Assembly (NCBI GenBank): GCA_001179505.1 | Contig: CDMY01000374.1 | Span: forward strand, 31,439-95,438 | DNA from: Vitrella brassicaformis CCMP3155 | Taxonomy: Eukaryota > Protista > Chromerida | DNA length: 64,000 nucleotides | Reading direction: 5' to 3' | Shown here: positions 1-49,910 of the stretch, piece after piece | Layout of the letters: every line of letters starts with the position of its first letter | Numbering within the stretch: position 1 is the first letter of the stretch | Position numbers and translations under genes: made by a program | The notes under the pieces: model-generated | Databases searched by the model: none | What the model was told of the DNA's origin: nothing | Seen by the model: only the letters and a program-made list of their open reading frames with translations

Positions 1-1040
1 GAAGCGAATGGATGGCATCTCCTGCATGTGTGCGCTGACTGTCTGCGAATGCTTCAGGAGGCGCATAGACAACGGTCCCACCTGATTATCACACACAACG
101 TACGGTCCTCAACCCGTATGCAGTGAAGTCAGTGACTCACCGAAGTGGCTGGAGCTGTGGTGTGTGCCCTGCAACTCTCTGGAGAGTCCGAAGTCGGATA
201 TTTTCACGTTTTGGTCATCATCCAGCTGGCGGACCCCCAGATGAGAAGAGACGTGCAAGGGAGACACATCGATCATGCGGTCTCATTCATCTGAACACTC
301 CCTAACCAGAACATTTTCCGGTTTGATGTCTCGATGGATGCCGCCCTTGCTGTGTATGTAGGCCAGCCCCTCACACAGCTGAGATGCATGAGGGCAGCTG
401 TCATGGCGATGTGTTTGTGTTACCGATGTGACCTAACCTGCCTGGCCAGCATGTATCTCTTGTTCTCGGGGAGGCCGCCCCTCCTTTGAAGTATGCTGAG
501 ACACTTCCGCAACGAGTCCACATAGAACTCTGCACAACAGACACCTGCACAAGACTGTCGCCAATGGTGCGGCCAGCCCTACCGAGGACAAGAAACGGGA
601 TTCTCTTGTCGTAGCAGACACCCAGGAGCTTGGCCACGTTGGGATGCTTCATACCTGCCACGAATTTGGCCTCGGCCTCGACCTCCTTTACGAGATTCTG
701 ATGACACAAAATCAGCGGCGTTGTTGCCATACAGAGGACCTGGTCGAGGCTGACTACACACGCACCTCCTTCCCCAAAGAATTGATGAGGTGTTTCTTCG
801 GAATCTTGAGGGCAACAGTCTGGTCCCTCCACTGCCCCTTGTACACCTCAGCAAACGCACCGTCCCCTGACACGGACCCCACAACACGAGGCAGTGGATG
901 CCACTGGATGGTTGGTTCGTACCGATGCAATCCACTTCATCGTCCCAGTAGAGCTCATGCAGTCGTATGGAGTCTATTTGGACAGAACCACGCCTCATCG
1001 GGGGAGGAGCGGGAAGGGGAGGGAACGCGCGAGCTTGCAT
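1..1040 (-). CDS. TKL-like Ser/Thr protein kinase; 5' part only, continues off the left edge of the window
   Basis: Spliced exons give [72 protein letters not shown] and [10 protein letters not shown]. Start is ATG 1040 or, more likely, ATG 998. Closest paralogue in the window is the kinase at 5550-7000 (shared DKRIPF, EFYVDSL, GGLPEN). Confidence 0.9.
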
Positions 1041-1084
1041 GCGGGAAGCCCCCGTCTCCCCCCACCCTTCTTTTGTAGTCCCCT

Positions 1085-4000
1085 ATGGAAGTCAGAGGGG
1101 GTCAGGCAGCGGGCGAGGCCATTTTGGCCTTTGTCCTGGACCTGAAAGGCAAAGTAGGGCGCGGGACGGACTCACTATCAGCACTCGCGAATAGCATATC
1201 GAAGTTCATGGAGGAGTACGATGACAGCAGTGAGGATAAACGACACTTCCGATGGATCATCGACAACGACGAGGCCACACAAGTACTCATCGACTGGGGG
1301 GGATCGGGGGCAGGCAGGGCTTGTCTACTTTCCTTTGCAGGACGGGCGCACGCTGCTGCACTGGGCAGCGAGGACAAGTCGGGGGGACGTCGTTGAGGCC
1401 TTGCTCTACTTTGGCCTCCAAAAGTTGATTGCCACACAGGACGATGTGAGACAAATGGCTGGTGGCATTGATGGCATGCACTCAAATTTGTCTGGCTTTC
1501 TCCTACAGGAACAGAAGACTCCCATCCATGCAGCAGCCGAGGCCGGCAATGCTCAGCTCGTGGCCCGGCTCGTCACGCTCACTGACCCCGCTGTCATCGC
1601 GCTCAAAGACAAGGTCAGCTTTACTTTGATTCGAGGGACGCAGATGTGTCTGTGTTTGCTCAGGATGGCAATACCGCCCTTCATCTGTGTGCCCTTGGAG
1701 GCCACACACACGTCACTCGGCTGCTGGTAGCCGCGGAGCGTATCAACACTCGGAACACCAAGGTACTAAGAAACCAACAAACATTATGGCAAGACACCTG
1801 TCTCACTCAGTTTGCTTCTTGTGGCTGTAGAGCCGTACGCCTCTTCACGAGGCCGCTGCCAATGGAAGTCCATCCGGCATGGAGGTGCTGCTGCAGGTGG
1901 CCGACATAGAAGCTCTGCTCATGAGGGACCACGTAAGGGCGCGACTAAACAGGGAACTACGCAACTCCGACTGTGATGCATAGTGTGTGTCTCCTGTCTG
2001 TCCATCAGGCCAGCCAGACAGCACTGTGTGTTGCCGCGGATTGCGGCAAAGGTGACTGCGTCCGCCTGCTCGTGACGGCTGCCCAGGCCAAGGGCTGCCC
2101 TCAGCTGCTGGACATGGGCGATAGGGACGACGATTTGCCCCTTTACCTCGCGCTATTCTCGGACAACTATGATGAAGAGATCGTCTTCCTTCTGGCTTCA
2201 AGAGAGCGCATTGTCAAACAGAGAAGGGTACCAACAACGATAAGTATCAAACAGGGCTTGGCAGCATCAGTGCTGATTGGCTGCAGCCTGATGGCCAGAC
2301 GCCGTTGCATCTGGCCGTCTCGAGAGGCGACGACGTGTTGCTGGTTGAGAAGCTGCTGAAGATGTTTGGCACGGACGCTTTGCAGATCAGAGACCACGTA
2401 AGGAAGCCGGATGCACGGAAGTCCAACACCAATAGTTCTTTGTGTCTCCATTGCAGAGTGGCCGCACGCCTTATGATGTGGCTCTCGAGGATTGCGATAC
2501 GGAAATGCAGCAAGTGCTGCGGGAATGGATGCCTACTGTCGGCGAATCCTCGCAACAGAAGCAGCAGCGGCTGTCTGAAGAAGCGGACGGCCGCCTCAAA
2601 GAGCACTACAACGTCTTCGGCTCGATCGAAGTCCCTCTCAGCACCACGAACTTTCCTCAGCAGATGGCACGTGCCCTCGGCCTGCCCGACAGATATGTGC
2701 AGCAGCTGCTTGCAGGTCAGGCTGCAAGGTCGCCCAACAAGGTGATTGCGGCCCAGCTGGCAGAGATTGAGGGCATCCTCGAGGAAGCGCGGGAGAAGCT
2801 GCTTCCAGGCTTCCCCGCCACGCACATCGGCTCAGGTTTCATCATCGTCCCCAGTTGGCTGCGAAAGCCCAAGAGCGAGCGGGAGATCCTCGATGAGGGG
2901 AGCAGAATTGGCGGACGAGTGTTCCCTTTGTGGCGAGACGGTGATTCAGATCTTCTCGTCTCGAACCATAGCAGTCAGCGGAAATTCGATGATCCTGATG
3001 AGCGGTTGCCGCTTAATGAGAGCATCGGGAACGTCTTCTCACCCTCGTTTGACAAGTGGAAGCGTCTGCCGGATCTTTTCCAGAACCCAGTGGTGGCCGC
3101 TCGCTCTCTTTCAAGTGACAGTGTCGTCCAGGGCCGCATAGGCGACTGTGCCTTCCTCAGCTCTCTTGTGGCACTCGCCAATTGTGAAGAGCAGAGCGGC
3201 CAGCGGCATCTGTCCAGCGGCATATACCCCAAAGTGTCCCTGTCGAGTACGGAGCCGGTCATCAGCCCCGAGGGCAAGTACGTGTGTCGGCTATACTTCA
3301 ATGGTGGTCCTCGCAAGGTATTGCTCGACGACACTATTCCTTCGCTGACCCCTACTGGCAGCGAGGCTCCTCGCAAGCTCACCGCGGTGTCTTCGATCCC
3401 TCGAGAGACCTGGGTCACATTGTTCGAGAAGGCATATGCAAAGGTAGAAAGGTGCGCGCTCCAACCATGCATTGGTGTTCTGTCTCCTGTTCATTGCTTC
3501 ATGCAGACGATGGGTGGATATGACGCGATAGACGGAAGTCATGCGCCAGACAACCTCTATCTGCTCAGCGGATGGATCGTCGAGTTGCTACATTTTCAGT
3601 TCTCAGTCGTCAAGGGGTTTGACGCAGACAAGCTGTGGAAGGAAATCTATTGGCCTCTCAGCGGCCGTCAAGCCGTTGCGTGCCTGTCCTCGCCGGCACG
3701 AGTAAGCCAATTGTCGACAGCATATACATACATTCTATGTGTCTCTGCCATTTCCCTCTCAGCCTATTGATCCCGTTGAGGCTAGGGACAAGCCAGAGCC
3801 CATATCACGCAGAACGGATGGGATGTCTTGCTGTGTCAGCAAGTCAGAGCCCATGGCTTCTGTTTCCTGTGGCATCAGGTTTGGCGTACGGGCATGCGTA
3901 TTCAGTGCTTGAGGCAGTGGAGGTTGATGGACGTCAGCTGCTGCTGGTTCGCAATCCTTGGCGAGAGCAGCGATGGAAAGGCAAGTATTCGCCAGACGAT

Positions 4001-5364
4001 CCCGGTTCGTGGACATCCAAAATGAGGCAACAGCTGAACTACGACCCTGATCAAGCGGTACCCGACGGAGAATGTATGTGGCTGACATGTCTTTGTCTCC
4101 TTCCTCTCCTGTCTCAGCGTCGGTCTGATGACGGGAGGTTCTGGATTAGCTGGGATGACGTTACGAAAGAGTTCCGTGGCATGTCCATTGCCTATAACTT
4201 CCACCCCTCGCGATTCCCTCATCGAGTCGACATTCATTCATGGTGAAGCGACACACAGGCACATACCTACAAATACAACCACGACACTTGTCTCTGTCTG
4301 CTCTTATCAGCTTCAACCCGAGTGGGCAGACGGCCTTTGTTTCGAGCGCGCGCATGATCTCGGGCTTCAGTCCTCAGTTTGCCCTCGTGTTCCACCCCAC
4401 GACGGCCGATTTCTATCAGTCGGAGCTGAATGTGTGGGTGCAGCTACACCGCCACGTCACCAGCGGCAAGAATGTCAAGAAGGCCAAGGAGAAGATCATC
4501 CGGATCTCCACCAACATCTATGCCGGCAGCGAGAGGATCCTAGGCGAGAATACGGCTCGCGACTGCTACTACGGGTCCTCTATCAACCTCATGATCAAGC
4601 TGGACAAGTTCAAGCTGCCTTGGAAGTAAGTGTGACTGAGACGCACCCCAAGGCATGATTGTGCTGTCTACGTCAATTCAGGAAAGACGGATGGCATCGG
4701 TGCGTCGTTCAGGCGCTTCAATCAGCCGTCTGACTTCAATCTCGACACAGATTCAGCAGCTTTCCATGACTGCATGACTGTCAGGAGGACTTAACTTCAC
4801 CCTATCAGTCTTCTCGACCGTCCGAGCCACCATTCACGAGCTGCCTCCCCTGATCCCCCGCGGATGGATATCGCAGCACTATGATGGTGAGTGGGCTGCA
4901 GAGTCAGCAAAAGGTCCAAGCCCGTCATCTTTTGATAAGAACCCCACCTTTGCCGTTACGACCCCTGAGAACGTCAAGGCTGTCATCCTGCTTGAGTCTC
5001 TCGAGGTGAGTGAAATGCATCAATCGACTGAGCTTTTGGTCCGTATTGTCTGTGTATCTGTGTAGTCGCATCGTGTGGGAATCACTGTGATTGACTCGCA
5101 AGGGAAACGGACGAGCAGTCCTGACCCTTACGAGACGAATGCAACACTGCTCACTGACGTCACACTGATGGTACGCGCTCGAGCAGGCGAAGACACAAGG
5201 ACATGTTTGATAGGCTTGTGTCTCTTTGGCTGCAGAAAGGCGACAATCAAGTCATTGTGTTCACGAGTGTGGCGGGCAGAACAGGCAAGTTTCGCTTGAG
5301 CATCCACACACCTGCTGTCAAGAGCGAGCGGAGACACCCACTCGTGAGGAGGGGCGCTAAGTGA
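1085..5364 (+). CDS. Ankyrin-repeat calpain-like cysteine protease (PalB/CAPN7-type CysPc plus C2-like domain III region)
   Basis: About 7-8 N-terminal ANK repeats (DGRTLLHWAA, QKTPIHAAA, GNTALHL, RTPLHEAA, GQTPLHLAV). Catalytic triad is Cys in QGRIGDCAFL (TGT 3147-3149), His in GHAYSVL (3893-3895) and Asn in RNPW (3953-3955). Also KAYAK and DDGRFWISW. Domain III-like tail: GEWAAESAKG..KNPTF and KGDNQVIVFTSVAGRTGKFRLSIH. The junction near 4690-4790 has no clean canonical solution by eye. Confidence 0.88.
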
Positions 5365-5549
5365 AGTGATAAGTCAGTCTGTGGTGTGGGGCCTCTGTCT
5401 GTCACTTTTGTGGACTGACTGCAAAGTGTGTCGTTCTGCAACACTCATAGTTATCCCGTATAGTTCACAGACATGGATAAATAGAGTGTGTATCTTGAAC
5501 TCGTGGGGCGGCCCCCTCTCCAAGCTCGCCGTCTCCCAAAATTTTAAAG

Positions 5550-8459
<2,910 letters not shown>

Positions 8460-8895
8460 GTTCTTCTGGTCAGACTCTGATGTGTGTGTGGAGTGTGTAA
8501 GGCCTTTCGTCTGTCCAGCTGGGTTTGCCTGACAGACAGCAGCTGCCACTTTTGTGTTGCGGTGCAGAGAGATCAAAGGGCAGCGCGGGAGATAAGTGTG
8601 CTATGACCTGATGTGTGCGGTGTGTCTTTCTGTCTGTGTGGTGTCTGTGTCGGTTCCAGTTGACGTGCAGGGGTCTGCTTCGGTGTTCGCTGGGTTAGGC
8701 TGTGTGTGTCTGATTGCCCGGGGGTAAAGTGCCTGTCTGTCTGTCTGTCTGGCTTGCCGGTTTGACTGTGTGAGTGTGGCAGCTGTCCGATGGCCCTTTC
8801 TGTGTCTGTCTGGATCGTGCTGCACTGCATCACATAAACCCCGCAGACAGACGACACCCACCTCTATCCCCAGTCAGCAGCTTTGGTTGACCAAG

Positions 8896-9024
8896 AAGGG
8901 CGACAGTCAAGTGATTGTGTTCACGAGTGTGGCGGGCAGGACAGGCAAGTTTCGCTTGAGCATCCACACACCTCCTGTCAAGAGCGACCGGAGACACCCA
9001 CTCGTGAGGAGGGGGGCTAAGTGA
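8896..9024 (+). pseudogene. Orphan copy of the calpain terminal exon
   Basis: KGDSQVIVFTSVAGRTGKFRLSIHTPPVKSDRRHPLVRRGAK-stop. About 7 differences in about 140 nt versus 5237-5364, by eye. Confidence 0.85.
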
Positions 9025-9408
9025 AGTGATAAGTCTGTGGTGGGTGCTAGGCTGTTGGACAGGTAGGTGAGGCTCTTAAAAATCTGACATTGTGTCGTCT
9101 GTGTGCTTGATGGATGGAAGCAGCACAGACGCATCGTGTCCATGAAACAACACCGCAGAGTTTGAAGTGTCAGCTGCGCCGGTCTCGCATACAACGTACA
9201 TCTTCGTCTACACAGACAAAGGTGTCTCCCCCGAGATGCAACGTTTGTTCTCTATGTGTCGCGTGCCTCTGATTGATCAGCGAGAGAACCGATGTCCACT
9301 CGTGTGCACAGGACTAGTGGAGAGAATTGTCGCGCGAAAAGCACTGCACTCTATCCTAGAAGGTCTCTTCTTCTCGTTCCTAACGGGTCCTTTCTTGTCG
9401 TTGACTAA

Positions 9409-14397: not shown

Positions 14398-17300
14398 TCA
14401 CATGATCATGCAGCAAGGCCCACAAGCAGGCTTGTACGGCCGCATGATCTCTCTGATCTCCGGCTTGTCGTTTGCCAATCCCCACGGGGTCTTCCCCTGT
14501 CGTCATGAAATGAGATGAGCACACCACTTAGCCCATCGATGGTGGGAATGTCTGTGGGCACTCACCCTGTTGTTTTCGATGTTCAGCAGCGCACCGCCGC
14601 CCCACTCGAGCCTTTGAGAAGGACACAGAGAGAGTGGATGAGACATTCGCGTTAGTCGGTCATTTGTGTCGCTCACAGCTGAGACACAGCTGCGGATTTG
14701 CCACTGAGTACAGCCACATGGAGTGCCGTGTCTCCGTCCTGTGTGTGTCATGCACACAGGAAGAAGGCAATCAATCAGACAAGGGGCATTCTGTGTATCT
14801 CCGTTTGTGTCTCTTCACATTGTTTGTCTGTGTCAGCAGGTCCTTTCGTTTGGCATACAGGGCCGCCATCACATCGACATGACCACCCTCGGCAGCCATC
14901 ATGAATGCCGCCACTCTGCAATCACCACACACACAATCGACACACTGAGGCGTCAGAGACATGTGTGTGGTCTCTTACCTTGTCGCGTGCATCGATCAGT
15001 TTGGGATCCCACGCCAGCAGCTTATTGACCGCCGCAACATGGCCATTGGCGGCAGCGAAGTGCAAAGCGGTGTAGCCATCCTATTGCATTCCATCACACC
15101 CGACACACATCTCATTATCACCAGCAGCACACAAGATGGTTTGTCTGTGTGTGGGTACCTCGGTTATTTGCTGCAGTACGTCAGGTTTGCTCTCATGCAT
15201 AAGAGACATCATGTCAGCGTGACCTAGCATGGTAGCTCGAATGAACGGTGTCCACTGCGCGCAGAAAGGATGAAAAGAGACCCCTCCATGAGTGCATCTC
15301 TTGCTCACCCCCTTTCCATTTCTGATGTCGAGAATCTCGCTGCCCATTTCTTCGACAAGCAAACGAGCCCACTCCACGTCGCCGGCCACCACGGCGTCGA
15401 ATATGGTCTGCACAGAATCAACACAAAGATGGCGGCCCATTGGCATGTGTGCAATTCAGTTGCTGTCTCCCTTACGTGTTTGACCTGCGGTGATGGCTGC
15501 TCCCGGGCAGGCGCCTCTGTAAAACACATCGCAACAGATAAATGAGAAGCTCCTCTGTGCACGCGAAGCCCACCACACCTGCTTCCGTCAGCCATTTGAC
15601 CCTGATGCCATCAGCCCATTCACCTCTCCTCGATATACCTGCCCGAGCGACATCCGCACACAACCCCTTGAGCTGTATGTGTGTGTGTGTGTGCTTACCT
15701 GATGCAGTGGTATATGTCCCTTTTCCATGCTGCTTGCCGTCCTTCCACTCGCCCTGATATACCAGACAGGACACATATGATGAAGTGGCTTAAGGGATTT
15801 GAGTCTCTCATGCACCTCGTAGCAGCGGCCGTCGGGCCACACGAATTTGCCCCATCCGTGTTTCTTGTCTCCGTGGTACGGGCCCTCGTAGTGGCGTCCG
15901 TCGGGCCACTCCATGAGACCCTCACCGTGCATTTTGTTGCCCTCCCACTGCATTCACAGCGGGCAGACCTTTGCGATGGTGTATGACACTGTATGTGTGT
16001 GTGCTGCGTATGACCTGTCCCCTGTAGAAGCGTCCTTCGGCCCATTTGTACGTCCCGGATCCTTGCAGGTTGTTGTGCACGAAGTGGCCCTCGTATGTGC
16101 TGCCATCGGGCCACGTGAACACGCCTTCTCCGTGCTTCATGCCGTCCTTGCAGTCAGAAAATGCACTTCTGTGTCCGAATGGTCGATTGTTATTAGTTGT
16201 GTATACGCACGTGTAGTATCCTTTGTATGCCGATCCGTCAGCCCATGTCTCGACGCCATAGCCAGTCTGCTTGTCGTCTGCCCAATCGCCCTCGTACCTG
16301 CAGCATTCACGACCAGCCCTGCCTGCATATGTCTTCGTCTCGTCCCTCGGGCACCTGGATCCGTCAGCATGTGTCAATTTGCCTTTGCCATGTCTCCTGT
16401 TGTCCTTCCATTCGCCCTCGTACACATCACCATTGATTTTTATGCATTTTCCGTGCCCCTGCATCAATGCATTGAGTGGATACTCGTCAGACCCCTTCCT
16501 TTGTCAGCAGCTCACGTGATATCTATTGGTCTTGAATTGTCCTTCGTATTTGCCCTCATCTGCTTTTTCCAGTATACCGTAGCCATCGAAGGTATTACCA
16601 ACCCACTCGCCCTCGTACTGCGCGCCTCCTGCAACAACAGGAGTCAGCCAGCTGACAAACTGCCAAATCGTCCTCATGGTGTCTCCACGCACCTTTGAGT
16701 CTCACCATAGACCGCCTTTTCCTTGCCTGTGGGAAAGAGAGCTGTCCTGGCCACACTTGGTGCATCGATTCGTTCGTGTGTACCTGGCTGGTGTTTTGTT
16801 GTTTGGTGGGGGCTGGTGTGGGAGTGACTGCAGTCAACGGATCATCTATAGTGTATCCTTGTGTGTATAGATGCCTCACACAGACACGCGCAGCCGACCT
16901 GTTTGCTCTTCCGCAACCGCAAGCTTGATCTGTGCGGGAGAGACCGAACTCGACGGCCCCGGCACTGTGCTGGCCATGCTCACGTGAATACCCGATGAAA
17001 CGCCGGCAGGAGGCACGTCAACGGGAGACACAGGGAGAGAGGGGGCCAACACCGCTTCTGCACGCAGCCAGAAAAACATCGGCCAATGAAGGCTTTTACC
17101 TGTGGCAAGAGCGCAAAGCAGTGGAAGTGTATTTTCTGACGAACCAGATGGAGAGTCCAGCATGGCCAACACCTAGCGAGCAGTCAGGCAAGCAGATAGT
17201 CGACATGCGCACGCCTTCGCCCAAAAGTCCATGTGAGGTACCTCTTTGGCTGTGGGGCGATCTTTTGGATTGAAGGCGAAACAACTCTGAGCAGCAATCA

Positions 17301-18713
17301 CAATCGGAAGGGAAATGCAGCACGAGAAAGGTTTTCGGCTTACCTTGATGGCACCCTTGATGTGCTCAGGCAGGGAATCGGGGATGCGGGGAACCTGACA
17401 CGCGTGTGCAAAAAAAGGCCTTCAGGGAATCTGTCAACATGTGTCAACGTGGCAGGTCACCTGCTTTCGGACCACAACGGCCATCATGATATTTACGGCA
17501 CTTTGGCCTTCAAAGGGAGGCCCACCTGAACATCACATATATAGGCTGCAAGTGTGTCCGAGTGAAGGTTGCATCTGCTGACCGCCACACAGCTCCGCAA
17601 TGATGCATCCAACCGCTCATATGTCCGCCTCCATAGAGGGCTTCCCCACTGCACACACCGGCAGTCATTCAAGTTCCCAAGCCCATCGGCTTTTGTTGTA
17701 CTTACAGTTGTCTGGATCCAAAGCTTCAGACGACATATAATTGGAGGTCCCCTTAATGCCATCTGCAGTGCAGGCACGAATGCACCAACACACACAGAGG
17801 CACCTCGCTCGCCGCCTTCCGCCATGCCATGTCTCCGCTTACCTGCAGCAGAGCTCGACGTCACTTGAACATTCCGCGTCATACCGAAGTCAGATATCTT
17901 GATCACCAAATACTCAGCCAACTGACAGACACGAGACACAACAAGAGGCTATGGCCACCGACCGAGAGGTGAAGGTTGTCTGCCCTCACGAGAATATTCC
18001 CCGGTTTTAGGTCTCGATGCAGGATTCCGTGGTCGTGCAGATACTGCACGCCCTCACATATCTGACGGCAATCGACACACAGATCTAGATGAGACGCGTG
18101 ACGCTGTCTGCTGTGCTGTACCTCTCTCACGAATCTGTTTCGCACATCTAGCGGCAGCCGTCTGTTCTTGGCCAAATATTTGTCCAGTGATCCGCCCTTA
18201 CACAACTCTGAGAATGATGGACACGCGACGCACAGTCAGGAAGCAGATGAATGAATCGAGGTGACCTGAGACGATCATGAGGCCGTGCTTGCCGTCCGTG
18301 CAGACACCGAGGAACTGCACAATGTTGGGGTGTCGCAGATGCTGCATCTCCTGAGCCTCGGACAGAACATCCTCCATCGCGCTAGCCATCAACTCCTGCA
18401 TGACAGTTGCATGACATTCGCGAGTGTCGTGTGATTTCACACACACCGCGATACTCACGCTGTCGGTAAGTTCCTCCCCGGTGAGAGGGGCGGCCTCCCT
18501 CAATTTCTCCATGTTTGTGATCTTTACAGCCACGTCCAGCCCCTTCCATTGGCCCTGGTACACGATACCGAACGCTCCACCCCCTGATACACACACACAG
18601 ATCACCCAATCGATGACATCGGGGCAGCAATTGGTCGTGAGCGCACCAAGCTTCTTGTCGCCCACAGTCAGGTCCCTCGCCCTGATCAACAGGCGAGGAA
18701 CGGGTGAAGCCAT
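14398..18713 (-). pseudogene. Kinase-MORN-ankyrin gene, copy B (nonsense + frameshift)
   Basis: Starts MASPVPRLLIRARDL, then [23 protein letters not shown] and KISDFGM. In-frame TGA at the Trp of ADIW (17617-17619; copy C has TGG). Then about 9-10 MORN repeats and an ANK block with a 5-nt deletion near 14910 (AGTGGC-GGCATTC versus ACTGGCTGGACGGCATTC in copy A). Confidence 0.85.
15590..16840 (-). repeat. MORN-repeat coding cassette inside copy B
   Basis: Successive YEGEW, YEGQF, YEGEW, YEGDW, YKGYY, YEGHF, YRGQW, YEGPY, YEGEW and RRGEW motifs with HG.G spacers. Confidence 0.92.
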
Positions 18714-19980
18714 GAGGAGCGAACTGTGCTCGTTAGCCCCGCTGTCCGTTCGGCCCCCAACGCTCCCAGGATTCTCGACTATCCGCCGGCAGATTGGTAT
18801 CCACAGAGACATTTTGGTCCACGTGCGGGTGCTCACGCGCCTTTTTGTATCTCAACTGACTGAGGACGGTCCTTGTTACATACACCCACCCCATCATGTG
18901 ACCCGGCATGCGTCTGTGTGGATGAATTCTACTCGATGCGATGGAGGAATGTCACTGCATGGTGATGCGATCGATCAACACTCACGCAGCCGCGAAAAGA
19001 GTTCTCATTACAGGCGCTCATTTCTGACCGTAAAGGCAGCAGTACACTGCTAATTGTGGACCGAGTAGCAGCGCCCACATTAGTCAATCACCCTTACCGG
19101 CCGATCTCCTCCCTCTCTGTTGGTGTGTGCTATACTTGTCAGCCACCGAAACTCATCTCGTTGTCCATCCATCTCAACACCGTAAAACTCACAATGATCG
19201 AACCGATGAGCCGTACAGCCAGAGACTGCATGGTGTCTGCTTGTCTGTCTGTCTCATCCGTGTCTCTTCCTTAACTGCACCGCCCTTCCCTGTATGGCGG
19301 TCGTGACGTTGACCATGTGCGCAGGAAGGGAAGGCATGAGTGGCAAAAACAGATGGGTAACAGAACCAGCGCGTTTGTGCATTGTTACGCAGCTTAGACA
19401 ATGCATGTGTGTGGCAAAAAGCGGTCGGGTGGCCACGCGAGAGAAGTGGGAGCAAAAAGACGTTCGTCTGTGAGGGTGCTGGTTGGTACGTACGTACACA
19501 GGTTAAATACATACACATACACAGATGGATAGGCACACGACGGTTAGATAAATACATATCACACAGCGTCATGTGGCCCGAACAGTGGAACGTGTGCACT
19601 ACATGTGCACATGTGTGTGTATGTGCCTGGCTTTCTGTCTGTCTGTCTGTTTGTCTGTTGGCTGGCAGGGATTGAACTGAACTTTGACCGCGAAGTCGTG
19701 CAAGTGGTCTTCAAGTGGGCAGCCGAAAGGAAGCCTTTGCAAGGGAGGAGGCCATTCGACTCGGTGCCTTCCTGACGGAACGCATCACTGACTTGCCGTG
19801 CAGACGCGCGCATACAGATTTATCTCTGTGGTTGCATCTGAGACACTTTGGTCCACGTGTGGGGACCGTCAGCTCGTCTTCTTGTGTCATGTGACTACGG
19901 ACGGTCCCTATTAAGTACACCCAGTCACTTCAGGACCCCTATCGCACTCATGCCCGGAATGAAAGGCAGGATACGGGCGC

Positions 19981-20541: not shown

Positions 20542-23500
20542 TCACATGATCATCCAGCAAGGCCCAGAAGCAGGCTTGTACGGCCGCATGATCTTTCTGA
20601 TCTCCGGCCTGTTTGCCGCCCAGAACCATGGCGTCAGTCCCTGTTGTGATGAGATGAGCTGAGCAAACCACTCAGCCCATCGATGGTGGGAATATCGGTG
20701 TGCACTTACCTTGTTGTTTGTGATGTCCAGCAGAGCACCGCCCCCCCACTCGAGCCTTTGAGAAGGACACACACACAGAGAGAGAGAGAGAGAGTGGATG
20801 AGATGTTCGCATCAGTCAGTCATCTGTGTCGCCCACAGCTGAAACACAGCGGCAGATTTGCCCCAGAGTACAGCCCCATGGAGTGCCGTGTCGCCCTCCT
20901 GTGTGTGTCATGCACACAGAGGAAAGGCAATCAATCAGTGAGAGAAGATTGTGTTGTCTCACCTTGTCGGTCTGTGTGAGAAGGTTCTTTCGTTTGGCAT
21001 ACAGGGCCTTCAACACATCGACATGACCATTCCCGGCAGCATAGATGAATGGCGTGGCGCCCTCCTGCAATCAACACACGTACACACACAATCGAGACAC
21101 TGAAGCGTCAAAGACATGTGTATGCTCTCCTAGATTGTCGCGTGCATCGATCAGTTTGGGATCCCACTCCATCAGCTTATTGACAGCCGCGACATGGCCC
21201 TCGTAGACAGCCTTGTGCAGGGCAGTGTCACCACGCTGCATTGCGTCACACCCAATACACTCTTTATCACCATCAGCAGTACAAGATGGTTTGTCTGTGT
21301 CGGTACCTTGGTCTCTGTTTGCTGCAGTACGTCAGGTTTGCTCGCATACATGACCGACATAACGCCCACCTCACCCTTCTGTGCAGCCTTGAGGAAGGGC
21401 GTGAACTGTGCGCAGGAATGAGAAGACACAGACCACTGAGTGCATTTCGATCGTCTTCACGATTCCATACCTCGAAATTGTATTTGTCTCGTTCCCGTTT
21501 GTCGAGTATGTCCTTGCCATCCCTCTCGATGAGCAAACGAACTGACAGAGACCATGACCGATGGATGGTTCGATGGATTCTTCACTTATATGTTTGAGTG
21601 TCTCGCGATGTCTCTGTTTACCCATCCCATCCCATGTTACCGGACTGCTCATCGGCGGCCTTGACGGCTTCGAAGATGTCAGTCTGACAGACAATCAGCA
21701 CAAGAACAGCGGCCCATTGACGTGTGGGGTTTAGTTGCTGTTTCCCTTACGTGTTTGATCTGCGGCTGTGGAGGGCTCGGCGATGTCTTCACTGACGGCT
21801 GCTGGACGGGGAACGCTGCACGACACACATGACACATGAAACGATTCAATACATGTGCGTGCCTTCCACAGCTGACCTGTTTGCTCTTGCGGAACCACAA
21901 GTTTGATCTGTGCTGGCGAGACCGCACTCGGTGGCCCCGTTATGGTGCTGGCCATGCTCGCATGGACACCCGCTGTATGGCCAATGGGAGACACGACAGC
22001 GGGAGAAACAGAGGGAGGGAGAACCGACAACACCTCTGCACGTAGTCAAGCAGTCTAAATTAGGCGACGGGGGCTGGCCCAAGGCGTTTAACCGGCAATT
22101 GACCTGTATCTTTCGACGGACTCGCCGGAATACCCAGCTTGGCCAACAACTACCAAGCGGTCAGGGAAGTAGACACTCGACATGCACACGCCTTTGTCCA
22201 ATGTCTATATCAGGCACCTCTTTGGCTGTGGGGCGATCTTTTGGATTAAAGGCAAAACAACTCTGAACAGCAACCACGATCAGAAGGGAAACGCGGCAAA
22301 CAGGAAAGGGCCCTCGGCTTGTCTTGATGGCACTTTTGATGTGCTCAGGCAGGGAATCGGGGATGCGGGGAATCTGACATGCGTGTGCAAAAAAAGACTT
22401 CCAGAGAATCTGTCAACACGTGTCAACGTGGCAGGTCACCTGCTTTCGGACCACAACGGCCATCATGATATTTACGGCACTTCAGCCTCCGAAAGGAGGC
22501 CCACCTGAACATCACAGATATAGGCTGCAAGTGTGTCCGAGTGAAGGTTGCATCTGCTGACCGCCACACAGCTCCGCAATGATGCATCCAACCGCCCATA
22601 TGTCCGCCTCCATAGAGGGCTTCCCACTGCACACACCGGCAGTCATTCAAGTTCTCAAGCCCACCGGCTTTTGTTGCACTTACAGTTGTCTGGATCCAAA
22701 GCTTCAGGTGACATGTAATTGACGGTTCCCTTAATGCCACCTGCGGTGCGGTGACGGATGCAACAAGCACAGACGCACCTCACTCGCCGCCTTCCGCCAT
22801 GCCATGTCTCTTGCTACCTGCAGAAGAGCTCGACGTCACTTGAACATTCCGCGTCATGCCGAAGTCAGATATCTTGATCACCAAATACTCAGCCAACTGA
22901 CAGACACGAGACACAACAAGAGGCTATGGCCACCGACCGAGAGGTGAAGGTTGTCTGCCCTCACGAGAATATTGCCCGGTTTCAGGTCTCGATGCAGGAT
23001 TCCGTGGTCGTGAAGATACTGCACGCCCTCACATATCTAACGGCAATCGACACACAGATTGAGATGAGTCACCTGATGGCTCTGACGCTCGTATGCTTTG
23101 CTGTACCTCTCTCACGAATCTGTCTCGCACGTCGGGCGGCGGGGGTCCGTTCTTAGCGAGGTAGGACGCTAGAGAGCCGCCCTCACACAACTCTGAAAAT
23201 GACAAGCAGACATCACGAGACAGCCTGGCTGGACAAAGCGAAGTGTATGACCACCTGTGACGATCATGAGTCCGTGTTTCTTGTCTGCGCAAACACCTAA
23301 CAGCCGCACGATGTTGGGATGCCGCAGTGAAAGCATCGGCTCAGCCTCGATCAGAGCGTCCTCCATCGCTCCAGCCATCAGCTCCTATGCACATGCCACA
23401 ACAAGGCATGCGATAAACAATGCACGAGCGGCGACATCTCACACCCTCACGTCGTCATCGACCTCCTGTCCGGTCTCCCTCGTTTCCTCTCTCAGCTTCT

Positions 23501-23721
23501 CCATATTTGTCACCTTGACCGCCACTGGCTGGCCGCGCCAAACGCCTCTCAACACCACCCCGAATCCTCCACTCCCTTAGAAATGCACACACAAAGAAAC
23601 CAGCCCACTGACACTGACAGGTGGTTGCGGCCCGCAATTAGATTTTGTCGAGCTGACCAAGCCGCTTGTCCTCCACAGTCAGGTCCCTCGCCCTGATCAC
23701 CAAACGAGACGTGGCAGCCAT
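20542..23721 (-). pseudogene. Kinase-linker-ankyrin gene, copy C (frameshift, nonsense, dead donor)
   Basis: Starts MAATSRLVIRARDL, then [22 protein letters not shown] and MSPE. Relative to copy B there is a 1-nt deletion at about 22623 (ccc vs cccc) and an in-frame TGA at 22482-22484 (B has CAA). The donor after AIK reads AC instead of GT/GC (about 22321). ANK block follows. Confidence 0.85.
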
Positions 23722-26382: not shown

Positions 26383-27058
26383 TGTGGGCGTGCGGGCAGA
26401 CAACACGGTGGTCTGATGTGGTCTCCTGAGTGCTACTTCACCTTAAGCCGTTAAATGAGGTTGCGAATCGATGGATGCACTTGGCTATCCACTACACACC
26501 ACTAAGTCGTCGTGGCGTGTGAATTGCGCTGCCTGCACTGCACTGCATCACTCACTCAAATGCCTGTCAGACCTTATGGCAAGATTGCACAGCGGGCCCA
26601 CACACTGCGCGTCAGTCAGGGATTCAGTGCAACACAACGCACCTCAACTGAGTCTCCCCCACATCCATCCATCCATGAATGGCAATACGTCTGTATGTCT
26701 CGAGTATGTATGTACATCAGACCAATGAGCGTTACAGCAGCAGAGCATCCAAGCCATCCGTTATGCAGAGAGAAAGCTGTACACACCAGGAGAGCTAGAG
26801 GGAGTCGTATCATCTGTATCCATGTATCCACCAGCAACAAGGAGAGATCGAGATAATCGAGACAAAGAAGGCCAAAAACGGCCCGACTGACTGTCTGTCC
26901 GTTCCACCCACCCACCCATAGCACAGACAGATGGATCGTTGATCAGCGGACTGACACCCACCAGCAGAGCAACCAGCATTCAAAAACACATTCCATCAAG
27001 CAGGCATGAATGACCTGGCCCCAAAACGACCCACCCTCACGCCCTCCTTCCTTCCCCC

Positions 27059-30724: not shown

Positions 30725-33700
30725 ATGTCGGCCGCTCCCCGCCTCCGCATCGGTCGCAAGGACCTCACATTCAACGAGGCAGACAGGCTGGGTGAGCTCG
30801 AGACCTTCGCGCACCACACCGTCAGGGGAATGCGTGTGTGTGGCACTGTGGGTGTGTTCAGGGAGGGGGGGCTTCGGAACGGTCTTCAAGGGCATGTGGA
30901 AAGGTCAGCCTGTGGCTGTCAAGGTGGTCGACGAGGACATCAGACAAGAAATCGACAGAGATGTGGGCAAAGCGATACCTCCCGAATGAATGACGACTGT
31001 TACGAGTGTCTTTTGCTCATGCAGGACCTCTACGACGAGGTCTTGAAGGAGGTGGAGCCGATGCTGCACGTCAAACACCCCTATGTCATCAAGTTCCTGG
31101 GCATCTGCACCGACAAAACATATGGGCCCATGATCATCACAGGTGAACTCTGCTGTCTGCTCGTCGCGCCCACTTGCCTGCGGATTGTTTTCATGTGTCT
31201 CAGAGTTGTGTGAAGGGGGCTCGCTGCAGTCGTATCTCGAGAGTGGGGAGCCCCTGTCAGCCGACCTCCGCGCCAAGTTCACCAAACAGGTGAGAAACAA
31301 ATTAGGGCAGTAAGCCGAATCATCATACCGGCTCTTTGCTCCCTGACAGATTTGTGAAGCCATGCAAGCTTTTCACGACCATGGCGTTGTGCATAGAGAC
31401 CTAAAACCTGGCAACATACTCGTAAGCTGCACGCTGAGCCGTGCATTGTCCATTTGCTGTTTGTTTATGCTGCAGGTGACCAAACTATTTGACCTGAAAA
31501 TCACAGACTTCGGTCTCGTCATTGACCTCAGCAAGACACTGTCGACGGCACAAGGCGGTAAAGAGACGCATACAGAAAGAGACTCCGATTCAAATACACA
31601 TCACACGTCTATGTGCAGGGGCTGGCACATTTTTGTACATGGCCCCTGAGGCACTCGATTCGAATGGTGAAGTCAATCCAGCACCAAATAATGTTGTGTT
31701 CATGCATGGCTTGTGTGGCAGCCAAGGGGTTGACGACAGCGGCGGACATCTGGGCCGTCGGGGCGATCATCCTGCAGCTGCACGGCGTCTCAGTGCAGGT
31801 TCTGTTTAAGTGCCTCGTCAGATTGCGGAAGGTCCACCGAAGCGAACCCAAGACAGAAAGATAGAGTGCTATAGCTGGAGCCATTGTCACTGCCTTTAAT
31901 ATATGCAGGCACCCGACATTCCCGACTCCATCCCTCCACAGGCCAGAGACATCATCAAAGTAAGCGGACTGCTGTTTTCACATCGATTGCCGTACTTCGG
32001 AAAGGCCCTTGTTTTTCTCTGCGTGAAATGGATGATTCATCAGAAATGCTTTGCCGAGAAGCCCGCCGATCGGCCCACAGCCAAACAAGTCACATACAAG
32101 CGATCCGACACGGCAAATTGAGGGTGCTGATACGTCTGTCGCTTCTTGTTCACAGATTCTCGAGAAGCTGGGGGTCTCGTACGTGCCCTCAACTCAACAG
32201 GGGGCTGCTCCGCATACTCGGAAGGGCCCAATGGGGTGGCTGTTAGGAAGCTTCAAACGACAAGGTGCGTCTACACATGCTTAAGCTGCACACGATCGAT
32301 CGCATACGTGTTTGTCATTTTGTCTCGTTCTGGCCTCCAGCGGCTGTTTCGCATTCTCCGACAAGTGCATCGTCCACCAATGTGTCTGCCGTCGGGCACT
32401 CGTCCAGTGTGCACATGAGCACGGCCAACACCACAACGGGGCCGCCCAGCAGTGTGGCCAAGACCTCTCAGCCGCCCCCACAGCACATTGGTCGGGGAGA
32501 CACACACACACAGAGGGAGCCACACCTTTCGATGCTCTGTCGGTGTCGTGCAGCGCCTCCCGCCCAGCAGCCGTATGTGAAGACACCGGAGAGCGCCCCA
32601 CCGCCGCAGATCAAACACGTCAGGGAGACAGCAGCTTGAATCCCACACGTCAATGGGCCGCTGGTATTGTGCTGGCTGTGGGCAGACTGACATCTTCGAA
32701 GCCGTCAATGCCGCCGATCCGCAGTCCGACAAAGACACCCACACCCACCCATTGGCACTCGTGCGCGTGTGTGTGTGGTGTGTGTCAGGAATGTTCGTTT
32801 GCTCATCGCGAGGGACGGCAAGGGCATACTCGACAAACGAGACAACAACGGGGTATGCAACCATGAAGGCGACAGAGATTCCCTCAGTGGTCTGTCTGTG
32901 TGTTCTCGTTCATGCAGTGGACACCCTTCATCAAGGCTGCAACAAAGGGTCACGTGGGCGTCATGTCGGTTATCTATGAGAGCAAACCTGACGTACTGCA
33001 GCAAACAGACGAGGTACCTTGTGTGCTGCTGGATGAGCAGAAAATGTGTCTTGGCCGTGCCGAATGCAGACGTATGGATCGAATGCCATGCACAAGGCTG
33101 CCCTGTATGGCCATGTTGCGGCTGTCAATCAGCTGATGGCGTGGGATGCCAAACTGCTCGATGCACGCGGTGGCGCGGTAAGAGACTTCACACATGTCTC
33201 TGACGCCTCACTGTGTCACTTGCGTGTGTGTGTTGATTGCAGGATGGCAAGACGCCATTCATAATGGCGGTTTGCAACAAGGGTCACGTCGATGTGATGA
33301 AGTTTCTGTATGCCAAACGAAAGGACCTGCTTACACAGACGGACAATGTGAGACAACACAGTCTTCTCTCACTGATTGATTGCCTTCTTCCTGTGTGCAT
33401 GACACACACAGAACGGAGACACGGCACTCCATTGGGCTGCATTCTGGGGCAAATCTGCGGCTGTGTCTCAGCTGTGAGCGACACAGATGACTGACTGACG
33501 CGAACATCTCATCCACACTCTCTCTCTCTCTCTCTGTGTCATTCTCAAAGGCTTGAGTGGGGCGGCGGTGCGCTGCTGGACATCAAAGGCAATTACGTGA
33601 GTGCACACAGACATTCCCACCATCGATGGGCTGAGTGGTGTGCTCATCTCATCTCATGACCAACAGGGGAAGACGCCGTGGGACGATGCAAAGGACAAGC

Positions 33701-34878
33701 CGGAGATCAGAGAGATCATGCAGAAGTACAAGCGGTACGCAGCGTTCCCTACCCAGCAGCCGTCAGCGAAGACACCGCCGAGCGCCCCACAGCCGCAGAT
33801 CAAACACGTAAGGGAGACGGCAGATGAACCCCACACGTCAATTGGCCGCTGTTCTTGTGCTGGTTGTGTGGCAGACGGACATCTTTGAGGCCGCCAAGTT
33901 CGGCGATTTGCAGTCCGTCCGTTTGTTCATCGAGCGAGACGGCAAGAACATTCTCGACAAACGAGACGGCGGGGTATGCAATCGTGAAGCCGACAGAAAT
34001 GCCCTCGGTGGTCTGTCTGTGTGCTCTCATTTCTGCAGTTCACGCCCTTCCTGTAGGCTGCAGCAAAAGGTCACGTGGGCGTCATGTCGGTGATGTATGA
34101 GAGCAAACCCGACGTACTGCAGCAAACAGGCCTGGTACCGACACAGACAATGCATCTTCTGTGCTGCTGCTGGTCATGGTGAGAAGATGTGTGTTGGCTG
34201 TGATGGAATGCAGTCTGGTCGGAATGCCCTGCACTGGGCTGCTCGAGAGGGCCATGTTGCGGCGGTCAATAAGTTGATGGAGTGGGATCCCAAACTGATC
34301 GACGCACGCAACGAGGTAACAGAGCACACCCATGTCTCTGACGTTCCAGTGTGCCGATTGTGTGTGTGTGTGTGTTGATTGCAGCATGGCACCACGCCAT
34401 TCATCAAGGCTGCCAACAAGGGTCATGTCGATGTGATGAAGGCCCTGTATGCCATACGAAAGGACCTGCTGACACAGACCGACAACGTGAGACAACACAG
34501 TCTTCTCTCATCTGATTGATTGCCTTACTTTGTGTGCATGACACACACAGTTTGGACACACGGCACTCCATTATGCTGCAGGCATGGGCGAATCTGCGGC
34601 TGTGTCTCAGCTGTGGGCGACACAGATGACTGACTGACGCGAATGTCTCATCCACTCTCTCTCTCTCTCTCTGTGTGTGTCATTCTCAAAGGCTCGAGTG
34701 GGGCGGCGGTGCTCTGCTGGACATCAAAAACATATTTGTGAGTGCCCACACATATTCCCACCATCGATGGGCTGAGTGGTGTGCTCATCTCATCTCATGA
34801 CAACAGGGGGACACGCCCTGGGACAAGGCGGAGGGCAAGCCGGAGATCAGAGAGATCATGCAGAAGTACAAGCGCTAG
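30725..34878 (+). CDS. Kinase-linker-ankyrin gene, copy D, with tandemly duplicated ANK block (premature TAG in block 2)
   Basis: [41 protein letters not shown] and ADIWAVG. ANK block 1 (32690-33740) reads through KYKRYAAFPTQQP into a second linker and block 2. In-frame TAG at 34054-34056 (FTPFL-stop-AA; copy C has AAG). The terminal TAG is at 34876-34878. Confidence 0.8.
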
Positions 34879-46219: not shown

Positions 46220-46350
46220 TCACGTAGCCCCCCTCCTCACGAGTGGGTGTCTCCGGTCGCTCTTGACAGGAGGTGTGTGGATGCTCAAGCGAAACCTGCC
46301 TGTCTTGCCCGCCACACTCGTGAACACAATGAGCTGACTGTTGCCCTTTT
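46220..46350 (-). pseudogene. Second orphan copy of the calpain terminal exon, inside a ~580-nt duplicated 3' flank
   Basis: KGNSQLIVFTSVAGKTGRFRLSIHTPPVKSDRRHPLVRRGAT-stop. The segment 46210-46790 is the reverse-complement homologue of 8460-9035. Confidence 0.85.
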
Positions 46351-46788
46351 GGGTCAACCAAAAGTGCTGGCTGGGGATAGAGGTGGGTGTGGTCTGTCTG
46401 CGGGGTTTATGTGATGCAGTGCAGCACGATCCAGACAGACACAGACTCGGCCATCGGACAGCTGCCACACTCACACACTCAAACACACAAGTCAGACAGA
46501 CAGACAGACAGGCAGGCAGCCAGGCACTTCGCGCGCAATCAGACACACACAGCCTACCCCAACGAGCACCGAAGCAGACACCTGCACGTCAACTGGAACC
46601 GACAAAGACACCACATAGACAGAAAGGCACACCACACACATCAGGTCATAGCACACTCATCTCCCCCGCTGCCCTTTGATCTCTCTGCACCGCAACACAA
46701 AAGTGGCAGCTGCTGTCTGTCAGGTAAACCAAGCTGGACAGACGAAAAAGGCCTTACACACTTCACACACACATCAGACCAGAAGAAC

Positions 46789-49700
46789 CTATCGCTTGTA
46801 CTTCTGCATGATCTCTCTTATCTCGGCTTTCTTCTTCTCTTTTTCCGAAATCACGAACTCTGCCGCCTCGTCCCACGGCGTGTACCCCTGTTGTGATGAG
46901 ATGAGATGAGCACACCGCTCAGCCCATCGATGGTGTGAATGTCTGTGGGCACTCACCTCATTGTCTTTGATGTCCAGCAGCGCACCGCCGCCCCACTCGA
47001 GCCTTTGAGAATGACACACACACACAGAGAGAGAGAGAGTGTGGATGAGATGTTCGCGTCAGTCAGTCATCTGTGTCGCCCACAGCTGAGACACAGCCGT
47101 AGAGTGGCCATCCCGTGCAGCCCAATGAAGTGCCGTGTTTCCATTCTGTTTGTGTCATACACACAGACGAAAGGCAATCAAGCAGTGAGAGAAGACTGTG
47201 TTGTCTCACGTTGTTCGTCTGTGTGAGCAGGTCCTTTCGTTTGGCATACAGAGCCTCCAACACATCGACATGGCCATTGTAGGCAGCCGACATGAATGGC
47301 GTCCAGCCATACTGCAATCAAAACACACACACACACACAATCGACACACTGAGGCGTCAGAGGCATGTGTGTGCTCTGTCACCTTGTTGCGTGCATCGAT
47401 CAGTTTGGGATCCCACTCCATCAGCTTATTGACCGCCGCAACACGACCACTCCAGGCAGCCCGGTGCAGGGCAGTGTTACCAAGCTGCATTGCATCACGG
47501 CCAACACACATCTCCTCCTCATCAGCAGCAGCACAAAAGATGGTTTGTCTGTGTCGGTACCTGGTTGTCTGTTTGCTGCAGTACGTCAGGTTTGCTCTCA
47601 TACATGACCGACATGACGCCCACGTGACCCTCAGCTGCAGCCACGATGAAGGGTGTCCACTGCAGAAATGAGAACACACAGACAGACCACTGAGGGCATT
47701 CCTGTCGGCTTCACAATTGTTCCACACCCCGCTGCTTTCTCGTTTGTCGAGTATGTCCTTGCCGTCTCGCTCGATGAACAAACGGACGGACTACAAATCG
47801 CCGAACTTGGCGGCCTCAAAGATGTCCGTCTGCCACACAACCAGCACAAGAAGAGCGGCCCATTGACGTGTGGGATTCAGTCGCTGTCTCCCTTACGTGT
47901 TTAATTTGCGGCTGTGGGGCCCTCGGCGGTGTCTTCACTGACGGCTGCTGGGCGGGGGGCACTGCGCGACACACAGAGCATCGGATGGTGTGGCCCTGTG
48001 TGCGTCTCTGTGTGTGTGTGTCTCGCCGACCAATGTGCTGCGAGGGCGGCTGAGAGGTCTTGGCCACACTGCTGGCGGCCCCGTTGTGGTGCTGGCCGTG
48101 CTCATGTGCACACCCGACGAATGGCCGCCAGGAGATGACGCAGTGCCTGCATTTGACCGCAAGACGTCTACAGCAGAGAGGAGCCGCGCATCAATGATTA
48201 CCTCTAAAGCTCTCGCCCGTCCCGCGAAAGAATCCTCAGCGGAATCGCGGTGCCGGCGAGTCAGCTGCCTTCCCGCTTTGACTTCCAGACGAAGACGAGA
48301 TGCGCAACTTGTCGAGGACCTGTAATGGGACGAGCAGCAAGGCCCGACAAAGAGATGGGAAATATCTGCTCGTGTGTCTGACTTGTTTGGCTGTCGGACG
48401 ATTGGCGGTTTTGTAGGCAAAACACATCTGATGGACGCAAAGCGGAAGAGAGAGAAAGATCATGGATACCCATTCTGTTGTCGGTTGCCTTGATGGCAGT
48501 CTTGATGTGCGGCGGCAGAGACGCCGGAATATCAGGAATCTGACACGAAGGGAGACACGAGTGAATGAATAAGACCGAGGCAGTCTAATGAGGCGAATCG
48601 AGTACCTCTTTTTTGTTGACGACCTTTCGACTGATCTGCGCCATAACTTTTCCCTCAAACGGAGGCCGACCTGCACTCAGAGTATGTCGTGGCCGCTGTT
48701 CTTATGAGGAGTGTCACAGGGGATCTGCTGCTGACCTCCATGAATCTCCCCGAGTACTGAAGACGCACACATACACAAATGGACAAGAAAGAGGCGATGA
48801 AGTAGCGGCTTGCAACATGTCTCTCTTGTGTGTGGCATGGCTTGCTTACTGCCGCCCAAAGCCCAAATGTCCGCCTTGGCAGTCAGCTTGTCCACTGAAC
48901 GACATAGCAGTAAGACCCTCCAGCCAGTGACATTGACTCGCTTTGCTTACGATCTGTGTCGAAGCCCTCGGGCGGCATATAGTTGGGAGTCCCTCCAACT
49001 GCAGCACATGAGTCATTTCTGCTCTCGTGAGCCGCACTGCAAACATTGGTCTGTGTGTGACTACCAGCGGTGAGCGTTGTCTTTCTCTGTGCGCTGCGAA
49101 TCATTCCGAAGTCCGACAGTTTGATGTTGTGGCCTTCATCCAACTTAGATGAGTGAGACAACAAAAAGTCTGAACCTCTCATAGGAGGATCTCTATCGTG
49201 GCCGACCAGTATGTTCTCGGGTTTCAAATCTCTGTGGACGATGTGGTTGTCATGCATATACTTCACGGCCTCACAGATCTGTGACCAACATACACACACA
49301 TCTCTAGGCGGAGACACAAGAGACCTCTGCATGTATGCTCCCTTTCAACCTGTTTGGTGAATTTGTCTCGCACATCGAGTGGCAGCGGTCCGTGGCTCGC
49401 CAGGTAGGACGCTAGAGAGCCGCCCTCACACAACTCTGATGAGAACGACGGCAGAGACACCAGAAGGGACAAGGCGGATGGACGAAGGGGAGAATAGACT
49501 GACTACCTATGACGGTCATGAGGCCGTGTTTGTCGTCTCTGCAGACGCCCAGCAGCCGCACTATGTTGGGGTGATCGAGTTTGGTCATCGGGAGGGCCTT
49601 TCGCAGCACCTCCATGAACTGCGACTGCACACAAACACAAAGATGCGCACCGACAGCGGGGAGGCGTCTTCTGAGCATGTACCTCTCGGTCGAGCTCTTC

Positions 49701-49910
49701 ATGGCCCTTGTAGATTTTGACAGCCACGGGCCGCCCTCGGAGCTCCCCTCGACGAACAATACCGAAGCCGCCACTCCCTGAGGAACCCGCATGACAAACA
49801 CATGATCCGTTCAGCCAATGCCCTCAGCCTGGGCCGGGCGGTGAATAATGCTGACCGAGCTCCTTGTCGCTCACAGTGAGGTCCTTCGGGTCGATCAGCA
49901 GATCGGCCAT
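46789..49910 (-). pseudogene. Kinase-linker-ankyrin gene, copy E (premature stops after the kinase domain)
   Basis: [46 protein letters not shown] and ADIWALG. In-frame TGA at 48236-48238 and TAG at 47791-47793 (GDL-stop-SVR; copy D has CAG). The ANK block ends at TAG 46789-46791. Confidence 0.82.

Follow-up and report, generated by a model that had tools for sequence, protein, structure and literature searches.

A uniform scaffold combined with a diversifying binding face is a hallmark of the repeat receptors of recognition and immunity, such as the leucine-rich repeats (LRRs) of plants and animals and the repeats of fungal NOD-like receptors (NLRs). The same signature is found in a gene family of the chromerid alga Vitrella brassicaformis CCMP3155, which belongs to the free-living lineage closest to the apicomplexan parasites, and here it is directly coupled to a kinase instead of a NOD domain. 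The family was analysed in a stretch of 64,000 nucleotides (the window), corresponding to positions 31439-95438 of the 95,438-bp contig C374, which contains six genes (A to F) encoding a kinase, a linker, and an ankyrin (ANK) repeat cassette, together with gene G, which joins an orphan domain to ANK repeats, and the unrelated ANK-calpain gene H. In fungi, the ANK, TPR, and WD repeats of NLR/STAND proteins (HNWD; Dyrka et al. 2014) are conserved, evolve in concert, and are under positive selection on their concave face (PMC4986451). These repeats are exchanged within and between paralogues, vary in number, and lie behind combinatorial N-terminal effector domains (PMC4986451). The Vitrella genes likewise have a conserved scaffold with few hypervariable positions on the concave face (inner helix and beta-hairpin), concerted evolution, and varied front modules. 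Unlike the fungal proteins, they contain no NACHT or NB-ARC domain, having instead a tyrosine kinase-like (TKL) kinase or MORN partner and a proline-rich linker; their repeats are less than 85% identical within a gene, each is a phase-0 exon, some members carry a CaaX tail, and the host is an alveolate alga. As there is no NOD domain, the family is not an NLR family. With slightly more confidence than doubt, we propose that it is a multigene family, so far found only in V. brassicaformis, in which TKL-type serine/threonine kinases would be joined to a rapidly diversifying ANK ligand-recognition module of at least six repeats.

Three other systems offer points of comparison. Animal RIPK4 and ANKK1 have an N-terminal RIP-type TKL kinase and C-terminal ankyrin repeats; they are conserved and low-copy, and to our knowledge they have neither a hypervariable surface nor a lipid-anchor motif. 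The Vitrella proteins share with them the kinase-then-ANK order and the broad kinase group, but their kinase is not specifically RIPK-like. Libraries of designed ankyrin repeat proteins (DARPins) randomise positions 2, 3, 5, 13, 14, and 33 of the repeat. The Vitrella repeats similarly keep the framework and vary almost the same positions, plus position 10; unlike in DARPins, position 33 is conserved, variation falls in an extra hairpin residue, and the family is a natural one. Finally, the FIKK kinases of Plasmodium falciparum, which are partly subtelomeric, and the rhoptry (ROP) kinases of Toxoplasma carry targeting signals and act as secreted or exported effectors, and we know of no ANK sensor domain in either. 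Like these, the Vitrella kinases form a species-specific family, clustered or near chromosome ends, within the apicomplexan-chromerid lineage. No signal peptide was evident in the Vitrella N-termini read, which are short and lead straight into the kinase.

Gene models were built by three-frame reading and by exact mapping of public V. brassicaformis proteins, which map exactly onto the window; gene C was projected from gene B. The window is rich in GT-AG introns, with exons of ~30-40 codons. Family genes share one architecture: a kinase, a proline-rich linker of 50-100 residues, and a cassette consisting of a linker-end exon, the ANK exons, and ~580 bp of 3' flank. Linkers end in PQIKH, PNIKH, or PQVKH, and ANK cassettes start with (A/T)DIF(D/E)A and end with EIREIM.KYK. 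These boundaries agree with those given in a preliminary description of this DNA, whose five kinase-linker-ANK paralogues (A to E) were all recovered at or near their expected places. The 65-nt linker-end exon is followed by a1 (~102-108 nt, the N-terminal cap), a2 (96 nt), a3 (102 nt), a4 (102-105 nt), optional extra a3/a4 units, one repeat split into exons of 62 and 46 nt, and a last exon of 72-99 nt. A single symmetric exon, in phase 0 at both ends, encodes each internal ANK repeat, so that duplication, loss, or skipping of a repeat keeps the reading frame. Repeat number differs widely, from six ANK units in A (cap and last exon counted) to 13 in a cassette on a second contig (C249:71867-74107). 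In the cassette of P0152, a member upstream of the window, a three-exon unit (a3, a4, and the 46-nt exon) is present as an exact tandem duplicate (C374:9336-9880 and C374:10442-10986), which reflects either very recent duplication or an error of assembly.

Pfam ANK families match the annotated members, identifying the cassettes as ankyrin repeat domains. An AlphaFold model of family member P0160 has a mean predicted local distance difference test (pLDDT) score of 84.5, rising to 90-98 over most of the ANK region, in which paired helices recur every 33-35 residues; the linker and the tail are disordered. Gene B, P0002, P0153, P0160, and copies on C249 end in CGPCCVIM or CGPCCMIM, a CaaX tail that is a candidate lipid-anchor motif in this subset of members. 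A, the second cassette of D, E, and F have no CaaX and terminate in KYKR followed by a stop, and this group shares the ~580 bp 3' flank at ~90% identity. The relative CEM01724.1 begins with the myristoylation-like MGSSSSK. Two ANK-only arrays, of 18 exons (C249:62848-65661) and nine exons, lie at C249:62848-68943 (+) with no kinase upstream, and the first has a CaaX-like end.

Selection was analysed across C374 and C249, on which 168 cassette exons were catalogued and codon-aligned by exon type. Surface sites were defined in advance on the canonical ANK repeat (positions 3, 5, 13, and 14, and the hairpin tail), and substitutions were counted pairwise in 38 phylogenetically independent nearest exon pairs, with bootstrap confidence intervals (CI). 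The scaffold is nearly invariant, and ~7 positions per repeat take 8-13 different residues. At surface sites the proportion of nonsynonymous differences (pN) is 0.395, against a proportion of synonymous differences (pS) of 0.174 over all sites of the 38 pairs. The surface ratio (omega) is 2.8 (bootstrap 95% CI 2.3-3.6, with no replicate at or below 1), that at position 10 is 3.6, and that of the scaffold is 0.38. Introns flanking the compared exons have a p-distance of 0.158, which indicates that the neutral yardstick is not underestimated, and the variable codons have no elevated synonymous rate, which is evidence against a mutational hotspot. The AlphaFold model puts positions 10, 13, and 14 on a single face of the first helix and the other variable positions in hairpin loops. 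The counts show that the predicted concave face (beta-hairpin tips and helix-1 positions 10, 13, and 14) is under diversifying selection and the scaffold under purifying selection. The preliminary description had noted a variable ANK surface over a conserved scaffold and had proposed dN/dS at the concave ANK residues as a check; pairwise counting bears out the variable surface.

These numbers bear on a conventional explanation, in which the proteins are ordinary signalling kinases, the ANK region serves a fixed pathway as a scaffold, in the manner of RIPK4/ANKK1 or ILK, and the apparent hypervariability is loop variation among old paralogues. In its favour, fusions of kinase and ANK are common, and variation falls at positions for which the ANK repeat usually has no consensus. 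Against it, surface codons are near saturation (per-site pN 0.6-0.75) in cassettes that are themselves young (pS 0.17-0.30; intron p 0.158), and outside Vitrella no relatives were found at E < 1e-20 besides generic ANK or kinase proteins. We regard this explanation as very improbable.

The ANK cassettes and the kinases differ greatly in age, the cassettes being much the younger. Across ten gene pairs, median pS is 0.72 for the kinase and 0.30 for the ANK cassette: kinase pS is saturated (0.63-0.79) in all pairs of different kinase lineages, the sole same-lineage pair (g2 and B) giving 0.23, and cassette pS is 0.20-0.37 in every pair. In a blastn comparison of the window with itself, five regions share a block of 1.0-1.7 kb. 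These ANK blocks are 74-86% identical as DNA, introns included; most kinases cannot be aligned by blastn, and upstream of the block only B and C align (82%). The homology tract spans introns and the 3' flank, and since the flank is ~90% common to A, E, and F, it extends beyond the stop codon. Within one cassette the nearest relative switches exon by exon: in the second cassette of D, a1 is nearest to E (93%), a3 is nearest to F (97%), and for a2, a4, and a6 the nearest are other copies (85%), C249 copies among them. Repeats of one type inside one cassette are ~60-75% identical at the protein level, below the threshold used for fungal NLR repeats (>85% within one protein, over a minimum of 100 residues), with the exception of the C374:9336-9880/10442-10986 duplicate; conservation runs instead between cassettes of different genes. 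Together, the youth of the cassettes relative to the kinases and the exon-by-exon mosaics show that the cassettes undergo homogenisation or exchange from gene to gene, across contigs and down to single exons. Diversifying selection and concerted evolution are therefore both found in this family.

The cassette is also found behind different front modules. On C374 and C249 it follows at least five deeply diverged kinase lineages, a kinase plus MORN block (gene B), and MORN repeats alone, and it occurs in arrays with no upstream module. A distant ANK relative follows the orphan domain three times (gene G and two copies on C249), and this domain also occurs alone in a transcribed gene. The preliminary description had proposed swappable modules, and the joining of one young, mosaic cassette type to these several fronts agrees with that proposal. 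Its comparison with NLR-like non-self recognition holds for the evolutionary dynamics only: the Pfam matches of 33 listed proteins, ~22 of them family members, include no NACHT or NB-ARC domain, only kinase, ANK, MORN, or variants of these.

A bolder extension, which we consider a long shot, is that this is an active cassette-exchange system for receptor diversification in which ANK-only arrays, one candidate being the pair at 62.8-68.9 kb of C249, act as donors. New mosaic kinase-ANK receptors would then arise by frequent mitotic or meiotic gene conversion at the intron-flanked phase-0 exons. If true, this would be functionally comparable to the lamprey VLR or trypanosome VSG systems, feeding a cytosolic kinase receptor in an alga. 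A mosaic sequence that fits this reading, and could equally be an assembler chimera, is the intronless 3.4-kb contig L020 (JGI sample 3300017297, Ga0186270_101020), which encodes P0163. L020 joins kinase exons of C965 (99-100%) to linker exons of D (99-100%; window 32339-32618) and to a1/a2 of C (98-100%; window 21316-21686), switching source at exon borders. Apart from a chimera, it might represent an unassembled paralogue or a real recombinant.

In the kinase-coupled recognition that we favour, the proteins would be cytosolic and lie on the inner face of a membrane. The variable ANK face would bind changing ligands, most likely molecules of microbes, viruses, or other cells, and binding would be converted into phosphorylation; the same cassette would be coupled also to other front modules such as MORN. 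We infer an immune-like sensing role. If functional, the family would point to intracellular recognition by a separate, kinase-coupled route in alveolates, and with ~36 cassettes and one repeat per exon it offers a compact model for repeat shuffling. The variable face might instead track endogenous co-evolving partners, such as paralogue-specific substrates or regulators, determinants of mating or kin recognition, or a selfish drive/antidote pair. In favour of this, the same evolutionary signature is known from fungal allorecognition genes (PMC4986451), and several cassettes are joined to non-kinase modules; against it, the neighbourhood of the genes showed no candidate partner family, and the present data do not separate self from non-self ligands. 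We consider endogenous partners unlikely. Several points weigh against our preferred interpretation. Damage affects over half of the copies in the window, and the family may in part be decaying; the genome evidence comes from one isolate; gene conversion breaks the tree assumptions of dN/dS methods, and the omega values come from pairwise counting; and the placing of the variable sites on the concave face follows from the canonical ANK repeat and the secondary structure of the model, not from measured exposure.

Four of the seven family genes in the window (gene G included) look damaged, which accords with the birth and death proposed in the preliminary description, and B, D, and F keep long open frames. 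Gene A has no in-frame ATG before its first kinase exon and sits directly after a solo remnant of a cassette 3' flank. Gene C has TGA where B has CAA (kinase exon 22502-22437), its CaaX cysteine is changed to tryptophan, and its annotation is limited to the truncated 236-aa P0004; it is probably a pseudogene, judging by these lesions. In exon a1 of gene E (47829-47728), a TAG stands for the CAG found in the second cassette of D; the public model skips this exon, which, being symmetric, can be skipped in frame. The second cassette of D has its own TAG in exon a2, at 34054-34056, in a hypervariable codon. In gene G, a 1-nt frame break lies in an A/C run near 25335, in the first ANK exon, and could be an assembly error.

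Such lesions could mean that the locus is mostly decaying repetitive DNA near a chromosome end, shaped by relaxed constraint and gene conversion and with no current recognition function, and the partial or evasive public gene models (the exon skipped in E, the truncation of C) point the same way as the missing start codon of A, the stops in C, E, and the second cassette of D, and the frame break in G. Relaxed constraint, however, predicts omega ~1 everywhere, not 0.38 in the scaffold and 2.8 at the surface, and B, D, F, and several members on C249 retain long open frames and catalytic motifs. Some family members are also transcribed: MMETSP transcripts cluster at ≥90% identity with CEM01724.1 and CEM00691.1, and the intronless JGI contig L020 covers exons of C and D. 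We consider it improbable that the locus is mostly decaying.

The kinase motifs (G-loop, VAVK, HRDLKPxN, and DFG) are conserved and intact in most members. The closest PDB sequence matches across the full domain are MLK4, CTR1, and B-Raf, with ABL also among the matches, and PF07714 outscores PF00069, which places the domain in the TKL group. Foldseek matches include CSK, BMX, MLKL, CRAF, IRAK4, and TAK1, and are of TK/TKL fold. No RIPK entry, RIPK4 included, is among the best 60 PDB sequence matches, and the kinase is thus not assigned to the RIPK4/ANKK1 family. P0002 (C374:13109-16673) and P0153 (C249:8828-12970) have HRA in place of HRD and are otherwise intact and CaaX-bearing; on this substitution they are possible pseudokinases. 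P0152 contains a partial kinase followed by a full one.

Gene A (5550-8459, + strand) comprises kinase exons at ~5584-7012, a linker-end exon at ~7281-7363 that ends PPNIKH, and ANK exons a1-a6 at 7431-8459, and it ends with KYKR and a stop. The preliminary description had started the gene at 5550; its elements were found there and at the other positions it named, although an in-frame ATG at 5550 was not. Gene A is not among the annotated proteins retrieved. Its cassette 3' flank (8460-9038, +) is ~580 bp long and ~90% common to the flanks of E and F, and the solo remnant just upstream of the gene (5234-5386, +) is 93% identical to this flank (C374:36672-36824).

Gene B (P0154, 799 aa, 27 exons by exact mapping; 14398-18812, - strand) encodes a kinase (18812-17146), a proline-rich linker (17058-16900), a MORN block (15476-16828), and an ANK cassette (15407-14398) that ends in the CaaX motif CGPCCMIM and has a degenerate a4 repeat. 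The MORN block matches Pfam PF02493, and the PDB matches of the protein are to MORN1 and to MLK4/CTR1. Gene C (20542-23721, -), as projected from B, is its tandem copy without the MORN block. In an alignment of the two, the segment from B ~17237-17770 and C ~22215-22750 shows 33 transitions and 2 transversions in ~450 columns, the overall numbers being 166 and 87. No one-directional bias like that of repeat-induced point mutation (RIP) was found overall between B and C, changes running both ways (C>T, G>A, T>C, and A>G). An extra intron splits cap exon a1 in C (21547-21640) and in D (32725-32789), and the other cassettes do not have it. An initial assignment of a1 in C as destroyed was dropped, as the intronless L020 shows a1 split by an intron that is spliced out, as in D.

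Gene D (P0155; 30725-34878, +) encodes a kinase (30725-32263), a linker (32340-32618), and two ANK cassettes (32686-33596 and 33875-34878). The first cassette's final exon runs in frame into a second linker-end exon (33667-33807), a double-cassette fusion of the type that unequal exchange would leave. Gene E (P0159; 46789-49910, -) has its kinase at 49910-48290, its linker at 48145-47897, and its ANK cassette at 47829-46789, with 3' flank homology extending to ~46206. Gene F (P0164, 486 aa) runs out of the window: exact exon mapping and the domain map place its kinase exons at 1-998 (-) and its ANK cassette at C374:29618-30621. The sixth kinase reported at 1-1040 in the preliminary description is therefore present, as the 5' half (1-998) of a full family member. 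Further members, P0152 and P0002, lie upstream of the window on C374, giving nine kinase-ANK genes within 81 kb of this contig.

Gene G (23835-26383, +) encodes the orphan N-terminal domain (main exon 24074-25080) and a distant ANK array (25266-26383). The array starts with TIFEA and ends with GKTP..., with an exon plan different from that of the cassettes; compared with the cassettes it gives no blastn match and only weak scores with a hidden Markov model (HMM). The IFEA-type ANK block with an unrelated N-terminal domain noted at 23835 thus exists, and it falls outside the family as defined at the DNA level. The orphan domain, of ~300 residues (window 24074-25117, +; L009:6956-8296, -; L008:6928-7707, -), contains three QxW-like motifs (SQLW, EQW/EHW, and HLW). 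It has no Pfam match even at E = 10 and no PDB profile match, its AlphaFold model has a pLDDT of only 35, and a protein atlas search gave weak ricin-B/beta-trefoil leads only.

Gene H (1085-4700, +) encodes generic N-terminal ANK repeats (Pfam ANK matches in 1221-1730) and a calpain catalytic domain (Peptidase_C2, 2442-4246). PF00648 is matched in two consecutive open reading frames (ORFs; E = 2.7e-15 and 8.4e-15), which identifies the domain as a calpain, and the final ANK repeat and PF00648 lie within a single 442-aa ORF. The ANK repeats of H have no blastn similarity to the cassettes and a single weak match to the cassette HMM. The ANK array with a calpain in the preliminary description is accordingly real, and it too lies outside the cassette family at the DNA level.

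The genome census used a degenerate 33-nt pattern taken from the most conserved exon, with the reversed pattern as control, on an assembly of 1064 contigs from one isolate. It found 36 cassettes on 17 contigs, 11 of them on C374, as a minimum for the genome, and the control found none. A search with whole-cassette DNA returned the same contigs together with C228, C293, and C687, and did not find C484. Contig C374 ends in TTTAGGG repeats, so the array adjoins a telomere, as the preliminary description had it. Among at least 13 telomere-bearing contigs listed, only C374 carries the family; the 12 others have no cassettes, and general subtelomeric enrichment is thus not shown. Further, neither end of C249 (149 kb), which has at least 12 family genes, carries a telomere repeat. 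The family is clustered, and its largest cluster is subtelomeric.

Close relatives were found only in Vitrella records (NCBI, MMETSP, and JGI genome or transcript copies). A metagenome scan returned generic kinases only, ~30% identical. The Vitrella genome paper does not mention ankyrin or telomeres, and full-text literature searches found no paper on this ankyrin-kinase family. One repeat per phase-0 exon, CaaX tails, a surface dN/dS of ~2.8, cassettes younger than their kinases, and exon mosaics are new.

The telomere occupies the end of the window (63739-64000, +), where degenerate variant repeats give way to perfect TTTAGGG up to the contig end. In the subtelomeric junction (63739-63950), the variant heptamers form runs of GGGCTTT, GGGCTTA, GGGCTCA (~12 times), and GGGTCTA before the canonical TTTAGGG begins.

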